Shown piece after piece: positions 1,427 through 62,335 of a DNA stretch of 64,000 nucleotides. The stretch is from Octopus sinensis (taxonomy: Eukaryota). The stretch spans positions 3,954,605 to 4,018,604 of the forward strand of contig NC_043019.1 of assembly GCF_006345805.1 (NCBI RefSeq), given 5' to 3'. A program made the position numbers and the translations under genes. The notes under the pieces are model-generated. The model searched no databases. It saw only the letters and a list, made by a program, of their open reading frames with translations, and was not told where the DNA came from. The first letter of the stretch is position 1. Every line of letters starts with the position of its first letter.

Positions 1427-2451
1427 CTCGTAATAAACTCCATATGTCCTACCATCTGAGGGTGCTTCAATCCCTTTCTTCATCAGAAACGAAATATTTT
1501 CCCAGTTGTTGTTCATTATTCCAAGTGCTTCATATATGAGGCCTTTATCATAAATATCTTGAGCCTTCATCAAACTTTTCCCAATAATGTTTGTATATTT
1601 GAGCTTTACCAAATCATTGCTGTGTACATTGTCAATCTGTTGTTTAGTAATTGCCCGTATTAATTCTTGTACTTGGAAATTCTGTAATTCTAAATCTGAA
1701 CTGATCAAACCTTGTTCGACAAGTGGCATCAAAACATGCATCTTGGAAGCTGGTTGACTAGAAGAACCAGTCATTTCAACAGCTTCCTCAATACAAAATC
1801 TTCCAGGAAAATATGAAAGCACTTTGATAGCATCTTGCTGTTCGTGAGAGAGTTGAGAAAAGTACTTGTCCATTTCTTGCTTAATATTACGTCTGTTAAT
1901 TGTACATTCGTCCAGCCAGTCATTGAGCTTGGTTTCATCACAAATCATTTTGTAGATATCATTAAAAGAGAAATTATGACGAAACTGGGAGATTTTTTCT
2001 GCAAAGTAAATAAGAAGTCCTGGCAGGCCACAGGCATATCTGATGATGTTGTGTATTTGTTCTTTGTTCTCATCATCCGTCTCAATGTCTGAACAGCGAC
2101 CGAAAAGAAGCTGGGCATCTTTAATGGACAATGGACTCACTTTACACTTTCCAAACCTGATTCCATCAAACTGAAATGGTTCTCCACCACTAATATGAGA
2201 ATGATTTTTAGATTTGGGTGCAGTGGAAAGTCATTGTCGCAAAGCTCCTGGAAACCTGGAAGGAAGCTTTCTTGAATGTTCTGGAAATCATCAAAAATAC
2301 AAATTGTCCATTTCGTATTGGTGATACTACAACAATTGGTGAATGTATTGTACATGTTGGAAATATCAGACCAACTGCTATTATTAGAAATATGGATGTG
2401 TTTTATGTGGAGTCTTTCGGGGTTGGTTTCATCCTTCAATTCTTGACAGAC
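1427..2451 (-). CDS. STAND NTPase-TPR copy 1, coding exon 2 (NB-ARC core and winged helix), with a 1-nt frameshift near 2191
   Basis: Acceptor atatgacag|GTCTGT at 2451 and donor TACGAG|gtaaga at 1427. Length is 1025 nt versus 1026 in copy 2. Walker B ICIFDD, GLPG and LSYFP motifs are present. ORFs 2137-2439 and 1349-2140 are the two frames. Confidence 0.9.
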
Positions 2452-3826
2452 CTGTCATATTAGAAACATAACATTAGAACAAGTTCAAAGATTTCCATAG
2501 ATTCACTTATTTTATTGGTCTCTCAGTTTTTCTCTTTCTCTGTCTGACTTTATTACTCCCTCTCAATAACTGTCTCTTTGTCTATTCTTTTGTCTATGCA
2601 TTAGTTCAGGGTATCCTTTATATTCCTTCATATTCATCTTACAGTTTGTCTAAGTATCTTTCTGGAAAACAGTTTGTCACTTTGCCATTCTATCTCTTTA
2701 ATTATCTTTCTGTTAATTACACAGATGCTTTATCTCTTTTACTATCCATCTCTTATTTCATCTACCTCTCTCACTCTCTGTCTATCAATCAATTATTCTT
2801 GTGCTTGAGAAGATCTGTCAAGTCAAGTGAGGTCGTAGTCAGGGCTGATGCTGGTGTTTCGTAACTGGCACGTAAAAAACACCCCTTACACTCTTACAGT
2901 GGTTGGTGTTAGGAGGGGCATCCATCTGTAGAAACCATGACAAATTAGATTGGAACCTGGTGCAGCTCCCCAGCTTACCAGTTTTCAGCCAAACTGGCAG
3001 ACCCTCTACAGCCAGATGCCCCCCTCCTTCGGAAACCAAACTTACTTGTTTCCAAGGAAATATTTCTCTATAGGAAATTTCCATGGAATATTGGAAGTTA
3101 ACGACATTCATTTACAAGAAATCTACAATGTCAAGCCGAGGAGATGCAAACATACACACGTTCACAGATGCATACAAGCATAAACACAAACACACAAACA
3201 CACATATACACACCTGTCTGCCTACCTACATACTTACATACCTACCTACCTACGTACCTACCTACCTACATACCTACCTACCTACATACCTACTTACCTA
3301 CATACCTACCTACCTACATACCTACCTATCTACTTACCTACCTACCTACCTACCTACATACATACCTACCTACCTACCTACCTACCTGCCTGTCTACCTA
3401 CCTACCTACCTACCTACATACATACCTACCTACCTACCTACCTACCTACCTACCTACCTACTTACCTACCTACCTACCTACCTACCTACCCACCCACTCA
3501 CTTACATACATAATATATAAAGCAGTCAAACCTCTCCCAAATTGCCCACCTTCTTCATAACATAGGACAGGATACATTAAATAATATGATCATTGCCATA
3601 GACAGAATGGTTACAGGAGAAATACCTTTGATCATAGGTCAACCATCAACTCACCAAATGGTACAAAGACTTCAGTGACTGCCATTGTATGGGATTGAAC
3701 CAGAAATGCTTTCCTCTTTAGTCAGTAACTTAACTGTAAACCTCAAGAATCCCTAATAACCTACAGAAACGCAAAATGCAATAAGGTTAACGTAAAAAAA
3801 TGAGAAAACAATAGTAAATTTCTTAC

Positions 3827-4006
3827 AGTTTTCACAAGACTTGTTTTGCCAACATAAGGCAGTCCATAAACTTGTATTATTTGAGTATCTTCATCCTTGA
3901 TCAAGATCTTCAGTTTTTCCCTCTCATCATGTCGTCCAACAAAGTGTCTGCCAGAATTGCCTTGCTGTCTCATGTAATTGGGGGGTAATCGATATGGTGT
4001 TGCCAT
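3827..4006 (-). CDS. STAND NTPase-TPR copy 1, coding exon 1 (P-loop)
   Basis: MATPYRLPP...FVGR...GLPYVGKTSLVKT, then donor ACT|gtaaga. 180 nt, phase 0. Confidence 0.9.
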
Positions 4007-59339: not shown

Positions 59340-60362
59340 GTCTGTCAAGAATTGAAGGATGAAATCAACCCCGAAAGACTCCACATAAAACACATCCATA
59401 TTTCTAATAATAGCAGTTGGTCTGATATTTCCAACATGTACAATACATTCACCAATTGTTCCAGTATCACCAATACGAAATGGAAAATTTGTATTTTTGA
59501 TGATTTCCAGAACATTCAAGAAAGCTTCCTTCCAGGTTTCCAGGAGCTTTGTGACAATGACTTTCCACTGCAGAGAAATCTAAAAATCATTCTCATATTA
59601 AGTGGTGGAGAACCATTTCAGTTTGATGGAATCAGGTTTGGAAAGTGTAAAGTGAGTCCATTGTCCATTAAAGATGCACAGCTTATTTTCGGTCGCTGTT
59701 CAGACATTGAGACGGATGATGAGAACAAAGAACAACTACACAACATCATCAGATATGCCTGTGGCCTGCCAGGACTTCTTATTTACTTTGCAGAAAAAAT
59801 CTCCCAGTTTCATCATAATTTCTCTTTTGAGGATATCTACAAAATGATTTGTGATGAAACCAAGCTCAATGACTGGCTGGACGAATGTACAATTAACAGA
59901 CGTAATATTAAGCAAGAAATGGACAAGTACTTTTCTCATCTCTCTCGAACAGCAAGATGCTATCAAAGTGCTTTCATATTTTCCTGGAAGATTTGGTATT
60001 GAGGAAGCTGTTGAAATGACTGGTTCTTCTAGTCAACCAGCTTCCAAGATGCATGTTTTGATGCCACTGTCGAACAAGGTTTGATCAGTTCAGATTTAGA
60101 ATTACAGAATTTCCAAGTGCAAGAATTAATACGTGCAATTACTAAACAACAGATTGACAATGTACACAGCAATGATTTGGTAAAGCTCAGATATACAAAC
60201 ATTATTGGGAAAAGTTTGATGAAGGCTCAAGATATTTATGATAAAGGCCTCATATATGAAGCACTCGGAATAATGAACAACAACTGGGAAAATATTTCGT
60301 TTCTGATGAAGAAAGGGATTGAAGCACCCTCAGATGGTAGGACATATGGAGTTTATTATGAG
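59340..60362 (+). CDS. Copy 3 exon 2, with a -2 frameshift near 59945 and a -1 frameshift near 60068
   Basis: 1023 nt versus 1026; split over ORFs 59322, 59851 and 60081; splice sites intact. Confidence 0.9.
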
Positions 60363-62178
60363 GTAAGATATTTTGTCCTTAACAACGTGTCTTGTATCTT
60401 GTGTTGTAAGTCAGTCTTTCATATGTCGCATTTTAGTTTAACCTGTGTTATATCTTCCCACATCTTTACCATTGGTTCTCAATTGAGGGCCATATGGCCC
60501 ATGGGGTCCATATAAGAGTTTTGCTGTTGTTAAAATATATCAGCAAGAAATTGGTTATACTTCGACAATACACAAAATATTTCAATAATTTTTTAATACA
60601 ATTATTTATAATATTTAATTACAAAAATATGTGATTCTTTTAAACATCGAATGTCTAGGATGGTCCAATAGAGTGGAATAGCAATCAAAGGGGTCGATAG
60701 GTAAAAAACGGTTGAGAAACCCTGCTGTAAGCTCGGCATAGGGTCTCTCTCTGCCCCTTCTTACAAATTCTTTTTGGTTACATCTTATTCTGTCTTTTAT
60801 TACATCTTATTTGGGGTTTTTTCTGTTACATCTTAATCTGCACTCCAGCTACCTTGGACTAAGTGTCACTCAGAATATATTAGGTCAGACTCACTCTAGT
60901 TCATCAAACTCAGCCTCTTTGACAGTTTCAGTCTATCCTACTTTCTGTCAGTTCAGATCTGAGTCTGACTCAGTATATCACGTATCAGACATCATTTGGT
61001 TAGTTGATCCGAGACTCAGTATGATCCAAGATACACAATCCACTGTATTACATTGTACTTATCATCGCTAGTAAGGCACCAAACTATGGTGTGTGGCAGT
61101 AGTATTAGTATTATTAGTAGTAGTAGTAGTAGTAGTAGTAGCAACAGCTGTAGGAGTAGTTGTTGTTATACTTGTTGTAGTAACAGCAGCAATATTAATA
61201 GTTGTATAGTGGTGGAATCACCAATTCCATTGAAGCAGGGACTAACCGAAAGACAACCTTAGAGAGTAGTATGGTATAACTATTTTACTATTTTACATAT
61301 AATTTTTTTTACTTTAAAATTTCTAGATATGAAATGGTAACCATGTAAATTTTAAAACGTAACTTTTCTTCTTTATGGGGGAAATGGGAAAATATGAGTG
61401 AATATTTATTTTTATGACTGCTGTGTAGTGAGTCTATAAAATTGTATATATATATATATATATATATATATATACTACATATACACACACACACACACAC
61501 ATATATATATATATATTATATAAAGTGCATTAAGTAATCATTGTATTCCAATTTCCTTCACTTTTCAGTGAATAGTAGATGAGTGACTATCCTCAGACAC
61601 AACACAGGATACACTTTCAGGCTTTTGGGATAAAGTTTTCAGGAATAACCCAATAGGTTTACTATTAATTCTGTGAAGTATTCATGGGTCCTGCTAGTTA
61701 TTATTATAATAATTTTTTAAAGGAGTAAGCTGTCAGAATCGTTAGCATGCTGGACAAATGCATTGCGACATTTCATCCGTCTTTACATTCTGAGTTCAAA
61801 TTCCACTGCGGTCAACTTTGCTTTTCATCCTTTCAGGGTCAATAAATTAAGTACCAGTGAAACACTGGGTCGATGTAATCGATCAAGCTCCTTCCCCGAA
61901 ATTTCAAGCCTTTAGTGGAAAGGAATATTATTATTATATTATTACTCTTTGGGGCAGTAAAGATTTGAAATCATTAATATTTTTTCAGAAAAAACATTGA
62001 TTTCATATTTGGCACAAGGTCAGCAATTTCTGGGAAGAGGAAATTGATTTGAACTCAGAACATGAAGACAGACAAAATGACACCAAGCATTCTGTTTAGT
62101 GTGCTAATGGTTCTGCCAGCTCACCACATTATTTCTACAGACAAAATATTAACACATGTTACTGTGTTTGATTTTTAG

Positions 62179-62335
62179 ATAACATTAAAAGCCTCAAATA
62201 TACTGATGCTATGTCACCCTAGAGATTCAAGACAGTTTTTCCAAGCATGTCTACAAAACTCCCTGTTATTTGGCAATGAAGAAGAACAAGCTTTTATGAA
62301 TATAGCATATGGTGTATCCTTGACAGATTTACCAG
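62179..62335 (+). CDS. Copy 3 exon 3
   Basis: tttttag|ATA ... CCAG|gtatga; same 52-aa translation as copy 2 exon 3. Confidence 0.9.

Follow-up and report, generated by a model that had tools for sequence, protein, structure and literature searches.

An expanded cluster of NB-ARC-TPR genes in Octopus: putative nucleotide-dependent switches with a probable use in intracellular sensing

Proteins of cnidarians (Hydra, Acropora) and other early-branching animals in which a NACHT or NB-ARC domain is joined to tetratricopeptide repeats (TPRs) have been described as "Nod-like receptors" (PMC7642931), and their confusion with the bona fide Nod-like receptors (NLRs), which combine NACHT with leucine-rich repeats (LRRs), has been discussed (PMC3879445). 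The cnidarian NLR-like proteins have a STAND (signal transduction ATPases that have numerous domains) NTPase with TPRs in the place of the LRRs, have expanded in a lineage-specific manner, and a role as intracellular sensors has been proposed for them (PMC7642931; Hamada et al. and Lange et al., cited there). Here we have analysed a stretch of 64,000 nucleotides from Octopus sinensis (contig NC_043019.1, positions 3,954,605 to 4,018,604; hereafter the window), which contains three genes encoding proteins with the same combination of STAND NTPase and TPRs. Judged by their architecture, the octopus proteins and the mollusc and echinoderm family around them differ from the cnidarian ones in that they lack a recognisable effector domain and have a cysteine motif at the C-terminus. 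No description of this family or of the octopus array was found in the literature that we searched. Based on the analysis presented here, the cluster would encode nucleotide-dependent switches, and we consider a role in intracellular sensing or immunity to be their most likely use, with a probability of roughly 0.6.

Other described systems share parts of this architecture. The fungal NB-ARC-TPR NLRs (PMC4986451), also compared by architecture, have the same NB-ARC and TPR parts, with variable repeats, but they usually carry a HET, HeLo, PNP_UDP or similar effector at the N-terminus. The plant CC-NLRs (Sr35, ZAR1 and NRC2/3/4) show the same motif series (P-loop, Walker B, LxPL, GLPL) and likewise evolve in clusters with gene conversion; unlike the octopus proteins, they possess an LRR sensor, a CC or TIR effector and a conserved MHD histidine. 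In Apaf-1 and CED-4, the nucleotide-binding domain, the helical domain and the winged helix follow each other in the same order as in the octopus protein, which differs from them in having TPRs, neither CARD nor WD40, and a replaced MHD-type histidine. The best structural match over the whole length is PH0952 of Pyrococcus horikoshii (6mfv), which shows the same order of NTPase, arm and TPRs at ~13% identity; however, PH0952 and the bacterial NB-ARC-TPR proteins of the AfsR/SARP type are prokaryotic proteins with DNA-binding or kinase output domains, of which the octopus proteins have none. The bona fide metazoan NLRs differ in both halves, as the octopus proteins match neither NACHT nor LRR.

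Three paralogs and the domains of their products

The original prediction described three close paralogs, one inverted and two in tandem, each with the motifs FVGR, GLPYVGKT, ICIFDD, GLPG and LSYFP. A six-frame motif scan and a self-comparison of the window confirm this arrangement. Each of the five motifs occurs exactly three times, once in a minus-strand set (1805-3943) and once in each of two plus-strand sets (23882-25835 and 57907-59985), and the three units are 93-96% identical in nucleotide sequence across 3.2-3.8 kb, far above chance. The unit of copy 1 (772-4620, inverted) is 93.7% identical to that of copy 3 (57253-61018) and 93-96% identical to that of copy 2 (23202-26423), and copies 2 and 3 additionally share a segment (28649-30500 and 61725-63574) at 94% identity. 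Copy 1 is oriented leftward and copies 2 and 3 rightward; copies 1 and 2 are arranged head-to-head with their start codons 19.8 kb apart, and copies 1 and 3 extend past the ends of the window. The 5' regions of copies 1 and 3 (4909-10452 versus 48252-56114) are inverted homologs of each other (80-89% identity), and the inverted duplication therefore took in at least 6 kb of 5' flank.

The window is the corresponding locus of a very close relative of Octopus vulgaris, being ~98% identical to chromosome OX597836.1 of that species (97-98.4% over window positions 16.5-49.5 kb), on which P0002, the database protein closest to copy 2, is encoded. At least eight gene models are present there in two divergent arrays between 42.18 and 42.62 Mb, that is, over ~440 kb, and counting the counterpart of copy 1 gives at least eight or nine genes in the two diverging arrays. 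The window spans the turning point between the arrays and hence the centre of a large cluster. In Octopus bimaculoides, at least four loci are found on one scaffold, together with one outlier of 56% identity.

Synonymous divergence (dS) is 0.02-0.13 among the copies versus 0.005 between copy 2 and its O. vulgaris ortholog, and the duplications are therefore older than the split from O. vulgaris; the predicted recent expansion of a tandem and inverted cluster is borne out by the low values among the copies. It is extremely improbable that the three copies are artefacts of assembly, such as haplotigs or collapsed or duplicated contigs, instead of separate genes. Two unplaced O. sinensis contigs of 20 kb, VCDQ01009826.1 and VCDQ01004551.1 (loci L006 and L007), encode the same partial protein, P0001, and indicate that this assembly is not free of duplication artefacts; both might derive from one further copy, as haplotigs or duplicate contigs. 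The copies of the window, however, are 3-8% divergent and differ in intron content, one of them is inverted, and copies 2 and 3 have counterparts in the same order and orientation in the independent O. vulgaris assembly, where further copies are found on both strands.

The NTPase part gave sub-threshold P-loop matches or none when single sequences were searched against Pfam and PDB, and its homology is seen only with a profile of the family. Searched against PDB, this profile matched the STAND-TPR protein PH0952 (3.8e-13), Sr35 (7.9e-13), NRC2 (4.2e-12), Apaf-1 (4.9e-12) and AfsR (2e-8), and the match to Apaf-1 aligns profile positions 6-349 with residues 124-460, which comprise the nucleotide-binding domain, helical domain 1 and the winged-helix domain. 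The two best matches of this search, fused RecA multimers, were ignored as artefacts of a repeated P-loop match at profile positions 28-55. Among 40 family members, the Pfam NB-ARC model is matched by 18 at E<=1e-3 (best 2.4e-11) and NACHT by two. The Pfam scan of two octopus proteins, that of copy 2 and P0008 (a paralog of 772 amino acids), gave no match to NACHT, and membership of that group was rejected.

An alignment of 20 NTPase sequences displays the NB-ARC motif series in its order, namely FxGR, GxPxVGK[ST], hhhhFDxxE, hhhT[ST]x, LxPLSxxD/ExxxLL, CxGLPxL, LxYxPGxF and RFxIH. The Walker A motif GxxxxGK[ST] reads GLPYVGKT in all three window copies, its glycine and lysine being invariant in the alignment, and the Walker B motif, with the family consensus hhhhFDxxE, reads ICIFDD in all three. 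The GLPL-type motif is represented by VSPLSIxDAQLLF and CGLPGLL, the proline being invariant whether 40 or 20 sequences are aligned.

An AlphaFold (AF2) model of P0008, built with the 40-sequence alignment, reached a predicted local distance difference test score (pLDDT) of 84.4 and a predicted TM-score (pTM) of 0.74 and includes the winged helix; the single-sequence model of P0001 (pLDDT 38.8) was useless. Foldseek assigned the P0008 model a probability of 1.0 to PH0952, Apaf-1, CED-4, NRC3/4 and ZAR1. PH0952 was the top match (7.9e-10 over 727 columns), Apaf-1 was matched at 1.2e-6, and the superposition on CED-4 gave a TM-score of 0.63-0.65 and a root-mean-square deviation of 4.5-4.7 Å over ~370 columns. 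The AlphaFold and Foldseek comparison with Apaf-1 and CED-4 that the original prediction had proposed is thereby in place, and it assigns the predicted fold to the STAND class. The model and the profile matches indicate that the NTPase is of the STAND, NB-ARC (AP-ATPase) type and is followed by TPRs. Of the predicted combination of an NB-ARC or NACHT STAND NTPase with TPRs, the NB-ARC part stands by profile and predicted fold and the TPR part by Pfam, whereas NACHT falls away.

The TPR half of the copy 2 protein matches Pfam TPR_12 in three stretches with 55.7 bits, against a threshold of 30.1, and no Pfam match to LRR was obtained for this protein. In the P0008 model, helix pairs extend over approximately residues 395-715, and this part matches the TPRs of LGN, KLC and OGT in Foldseek. 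From the N- to the C-terminus, the protein thus consists of an N-terminus of ~20 amino acids, the NB-ARC STAND NTPase, some 8-10 TPR-like pairs of helices and, last, a short tail containing cysteines. Orthology to Apaf-1 or CED-4 was rejected, as neither CARD nor WD40 was matched.

The tail contains a C-x2-C-x~18-C motif, located at residues 731-753 of P0008 and encoded in the window by both terminal exons of copy 2 (E10a and E10b, see below). It is conserved across the molluscan and echinoderm homologs: its cysteines are kept in 14 of 16, 18 of 18 and 15 of 15 members that reach that far, and an aromatic residue is conserved five positions before the third cysteine. Confidence in the P0008 model is low from about residue 740 onwards to its C-terminus, the third cysteine included. 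The motif could be a metal-binding or an interaction site.

Evolution of the family and its proposed function

An exhaustive phmmer search with P0001 as the query against 1.84 billion representatives returned 55 proteins at E<=1e-3, named either "uncharacterized" or, in UniRef, "NB-ARC domain-containing". Homologs occur in a further cephalopod (Argonauta), in gastropods (Lottia, Haliotis, Batillaria), in bivalves (Solemya, Pecten, Ylistrum, Pinctada, Potamilus, Saccostrea, Mya) and, outside the molluscs, in a sea urchin, two crinoids and a hemichordate; the weakest matches are bacterial BTAD- or kinase-NB-ARC-TPR proteins. This distribution refutes the original prediction of a family specific to the cephalopod lineage. 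The next relatives of the octopus clade, Argonauta and the homolog P0009, are 27-31% identical to it in the region compared, which runs from the TPRs to the C-terminus. The copies of O. bimaculoides are about equidistant from all O. vulgaris copies, with no clear one-to-one orthology. The family is an old one, and the octopus array represents a young expansion, specific to this lineage, of a fast-evolving branch.

Selection was estimated by pairwise Nei-Gojobori comparison among the O. vulgaris paralogs. The ratio of nonsynonymous to synonymous divergence (dN/dS) was 0.26-0.68 for the NB-ARC part, 0.49-0.88 for the TPR exons and 0.65-1.9 for the last exon, the latter range being based on 106 codons with small counts. 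In the TPR part, dN is 2-4 times that in the NB-ARC part, and the genes are under purifying but relaxed selection, with the TPR half evolving faster. The dS values are discordant between the parts of a gene, for instance 0.022 (NB-ARC) versus 0.121 (TPR) for locus L003 compared with L001, which indicates exchange between copies.

Apaf-1, CED-4, the plant NLRs and MalT are established models for the switch mechanism of such NTPases. By analogy with them, the NTPase of the octopus proteins would be kept closed by the TPR arm; once the TPRs bind a ligand, nucleotide exchange and self-oligomerisation would become possible, and the oligomer would signal via a separately encoded partner, which is proposed because the protein itself has no effector domain. 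A role of this switch in sensing or immunity is favoured because of the tandem expansion, the mosaic pattern resembling gene conversion, and the fast evolution of the sensor half. The immune role is thus inferred from the architecture, the clustering and the faster-evolving putative sensor half.

It is also possible, albeit rather unlikely, that the NB-ARC-TPR switches have a non-immune job, for example in regulated scaffolding or assembly, with NPHP3, KLC and LGN as the model, and that the expansion of the genes reflects dosage or sub-functionalisation between tissues. The absence of an effector domain, the age of a family spread over molluscs and ambulacrarians, the similarity of the TPRs to those of the KLC, LGN and NPHP3 types and an overall dN/dS below 1 would all fit such a job. 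However, within the genus the closest copies are of young age and mosaic structure, with fast evolution of the half that putatively binds the ligand, they have no clear one-to-one orthologs in O. bimaculoides, which fits sensors better than housekeeping scaffolds, and the octopus clade has diverged strongly from its next relatives in the region from the TPRs to the C-terminus, as given above.

The sensing role can also be extended to a more specific and doubtful proposal, namely that the octopus array is a polymorphic, effector-less NB-ARC-TPR receptor system of a type unstudied in bilaterians. Its TPRs would be diversified by gene conversion among at least eight paralogs, it would signal via the C-terminal cysteine motif or a separate partner, and it might be a main NB-ARC platform for cell death or defence in a phylum that reportedly lacks Apaf-1. 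Apaf-1 has been reported to be absent from molluscs (PMC11463336).

Several observations weigh against switches used in intracellular sensing. The match to Pfam NB-ARC (PF00931) remains just below the cut-off of 23.5 bits for P0008 (23.0 bits) and for window copy 2 (18.7 bits), which also matches ATPase_2 and AAA_16 at sub-threshold level. The MHD-type histidine, which is part of RFxIH(G/D/S/A) in 7 of 19 relatives, is replaced by glutamine in octopus (FQVQE) and has thus been lost in the cephalopod branch. Judged by the order of the motifs, the 'T(S/T)R' of the RNBS-B/sensor-1 position reads SGG in octopus. Given these two replacements, the nucleotide switch may work differently or not at all. 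Effector domains such as CARD, PYD, Death, DED, TIR, CC or HET gave no Pfam match in the octopus protein or in any relative scanned, and only ~20 amino acids precede FVGR, a further 5' coding exon not being fully excluded. Outside the short last exon, dN/dS is never clearly above 1. Searches of protein collections yielded no RNA-derived contigs for the octopus copies. It should be noted that P0009, a homolog of 29% identity, is encoded uninterrupted on contigs of 4.6-4.8 kb from runs SRR29271470 and SRR29271484, which look like transcripts.

Frame breaks in the window are a further point of this kind. Compared with copy 2, exon 2 of copy 1 has a 1-bp deletion at exon nucleotide 261; in exon 2 of copy 3, 2 bp are missing at exon nucleotide 600 and a further 1 bp at 731, which leaves ~44 codons out of frame; and the two terminal exons of copy 2 show four (E10a) and six (E10b) single-base deletions relative to the intact O. 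vulgaris exons. Such breaks would be expected if the window were a decaying array in which copies 1 and 3, and perhaps copy 2 with its broken terminal exons, are pseudogenes of a birth-and-death process, but this is improbable. The broken exons are located where 1-bp gaps are in abnormal excess: in the alignment with O. vulgaris, positions 45.2-49.5 kb of the window show 85 gap events, of which 75 are of 1 bp, and only 49 mismatches, whereas elsewhere in most of the window there are ~4 mismatches per gap. The excess spans ~45200-60500 and consists mostly of bases absent from the window; a ratio of this sort is typical of a long-read consensus left unpolished where sequence is duplicated, rather than of evolution. 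At the positions that are broken in the window, copies 2 and 3 have open counterparts in O. vulgaris. In the comparison as a whole, which covers these two orthologs and three further paralogs and leaves out the counterpart of copy 1, all recovered exons are open, save exon 1 of L001 and L005 and exon 8 of L005; exon 1 of L003 was not found. In addition, the dN/dS of exon 2 among the window copies, 0.34-0.42, is not neutral. Because of the gap excess, the open O. vulgaris counterparts and this ratio, we regard the frame breaks as probably being assembly errors; that they mark pseudogenes was judged less likely, given the local excess of 1-bp gaps.

Gene models, public annotation and repeats

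The exon model was built with database proteins as guides, after which the splice junctions were read directly in the DNA (Table 1). The gene consists of 10 coding exons across ~23 kb, with GT-AG introns throughout, and encodes a product of 858 amino acids. The original prediction that copy 2 splices into at least 752 amino acids over nine exons holds: exons 1-9 all have AG/GT borders and total 2256 nt, which encode 752 amino acids in frame. Exon 2 encodes what remains of the nucleotide-binding domain, then the helical domain, in which CGLPGL lies, followed by the winged helix and the first part of the helical arm. To these we add a tenth, terminal exon, which lies behind an intron of 6.5 kb and is present in two tandem versions, E10a and E10b. 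Both have AG acceptors, and in O. vulgaris both form open frames, of 107 and 106 codons with the stop counted. E10b is nearer to the single terminal exon of the other paralogs, E10a being the divergent version; among the O. vulgaris paralogs, the four others that were examined showed no second terminal exon. The two versions may provide copy 2 with alternative C-termini. The last base of copy 1 exon 2 is position 1427 and that of copy 3 exon 3 is position 62335, which are exactly the limits given in the original prediction.

Table 1. Exons of the three window copies (window coordinates) and related gene models on O. vulgaris chromosome OX597836.1
Feature	Position	Strand	Remarks
Copy 1 exon 1	3827..4006	-	Start codon, FVGR, Walker A GLPYVGKT; 180 nt, intact, GT donor
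Copy 1 exon 2	1427..2451	-	Walker B ICIFDD, GLPG, winged-helix LSYFP; 1025 nt, AG/GT borders
Copy 2 exon 1	23819..23998	+	Amino acids 1-60; FVGR and P-loop
Copy 2 exon 2	25188..26213	+	Amino acids 61-402; zero indels vs O. vulgaris
Copy 2 exon 3	29100..29256	+	
Copy 2 exon 4	31187..31334	+	TPR
Copy 2 exon 5	33167..33276	+	TPR
Copy 2 exon 6	34764..34877	+	TPR
Copy 2 exon 7	37282..37425	+	TPR
Copy 2 exon 8	37887..37998	+	TPR
Copy 2 exon 9	39751..40015	+	TPR_12 match exceeding the Pfam threshold
Copy 2 exon E10a	46483..46799	+	Terminal; last helices and C-x2-C...C motif
Copy 2 exon E10b	47036..47347	+	Terminal; 85-88% identical to E10a
Copy 3 exon 1	57844..58023	+	P-loop
Copy 3 exon 2	59340..60362	+	1023 nt
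Copy 3 exon 3	62179..62335	+	Gene continues beyond the right window end
O. vulgaris minus-strand models	42.18, 42.32, 42.35 Mb	-	
O. vulgaris plus-strand models	42.49, 42.53, 42.56, 42.59 Mb	+	42.49, copy 2; 42.53, positional counterpart of copy 3
Further O. vulgaris model	starts 42.615 Mb	+	

The five O. vulgaris paralogs have the same 10 exons, the same GT-AG borders and the same 858-codon frame, with the following exceptions. Exon 1 was not found in L003, and exon 8 of L005 contains an out-of-frame stretch. The recovered exons have the lengths of those of copy 2, except exon 1 of L001 (8549-8727) and L005 (7920-8098), in which a run of five instead of six C residues causes the frame to be lost after MATPYRL, so that a 1-bp repair is needed. 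The shorter run may be either genuine or a homopolymer error, and it is probably the reason why public models begin at an internal methionine without the P-loop. At the locus starting at 42.615 Mb (L011, 24450-26444), a downstream model of 981 amino acids has a match to DUF7041 and a faint one to TPR_12; it may represent the fusion of another copy with a part derived from a retroelement.

The genes are already annotated with RefSeq LOC names as "uncharacterized", and a first protein search returned seven matches, all from Octopus, including LOC106871096 of O. bimaculoides. P0002-P0005 begin at an internal methionine and are without the P-loop exon, and in several models TPR exons are left out. 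The suggestion that annotation based on open reading frames (ORFs) would miss the TPR half was therefore correct in so far as the public models are incomplete, lacking the P-loop exon or TPR exons, and not in so far as the genes do carry names in RefSeq.

The introns are rich in repeats. A (CCTA)n microsatellite is present in intron 1 of all three copies (3221-3494, 58358-58602 and a shorter array near 24330-24430), and it accounts for the long 'LPTY' pseudo-ORFs among the listed ORFs. In copy 2, intron 9 has a very high AT content (GC 0.25) and contains satellites of 9.3 copies of a 78-bp unit and 11.9 copies of a 36-bp unit (41424-42550 and 45039-45462); an ORF of 269 amino acids (41424-42233) enters the first of these and has no Pfam match. 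Stop-free stretches in introns 2, 3 and 6 (26425-26757, 29456-29944 and 35621-35950) bear what we take to be a resemblance to remnants of reverse transcriptases or transposases, and the four intronic transposon-like ORF fragments had no Pfam match at E<=0.01. At 35143-35509, a unit of 184 bp with a tRNA-like box (GAGTTCAAATTCC) is present in two tandem copies, with related pieces at 14702-15107 and 19675-19931; this candidate is probably a short interspersed nuclear element (SINE).

Significance for cephalopods and related phyla

The 10-exon model of 858 amino acids is the one that should be used for work on expression and evolution, as the public models are truncated or skip exons. Cephalopods are not known to possess adaptive immunity, and few NLRs have been recognised in them. 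Because of this, and of the reported lack of Apaf-1 in molluscs, a concrete candidate for sensing within their cells is provided by the clustered and fast-evolving NB-ARC-TPR family. As the family is also present, under the name "uncharacterized", in bivalves, gastropods and echinoderms, a function found in one of them would transfer widely.

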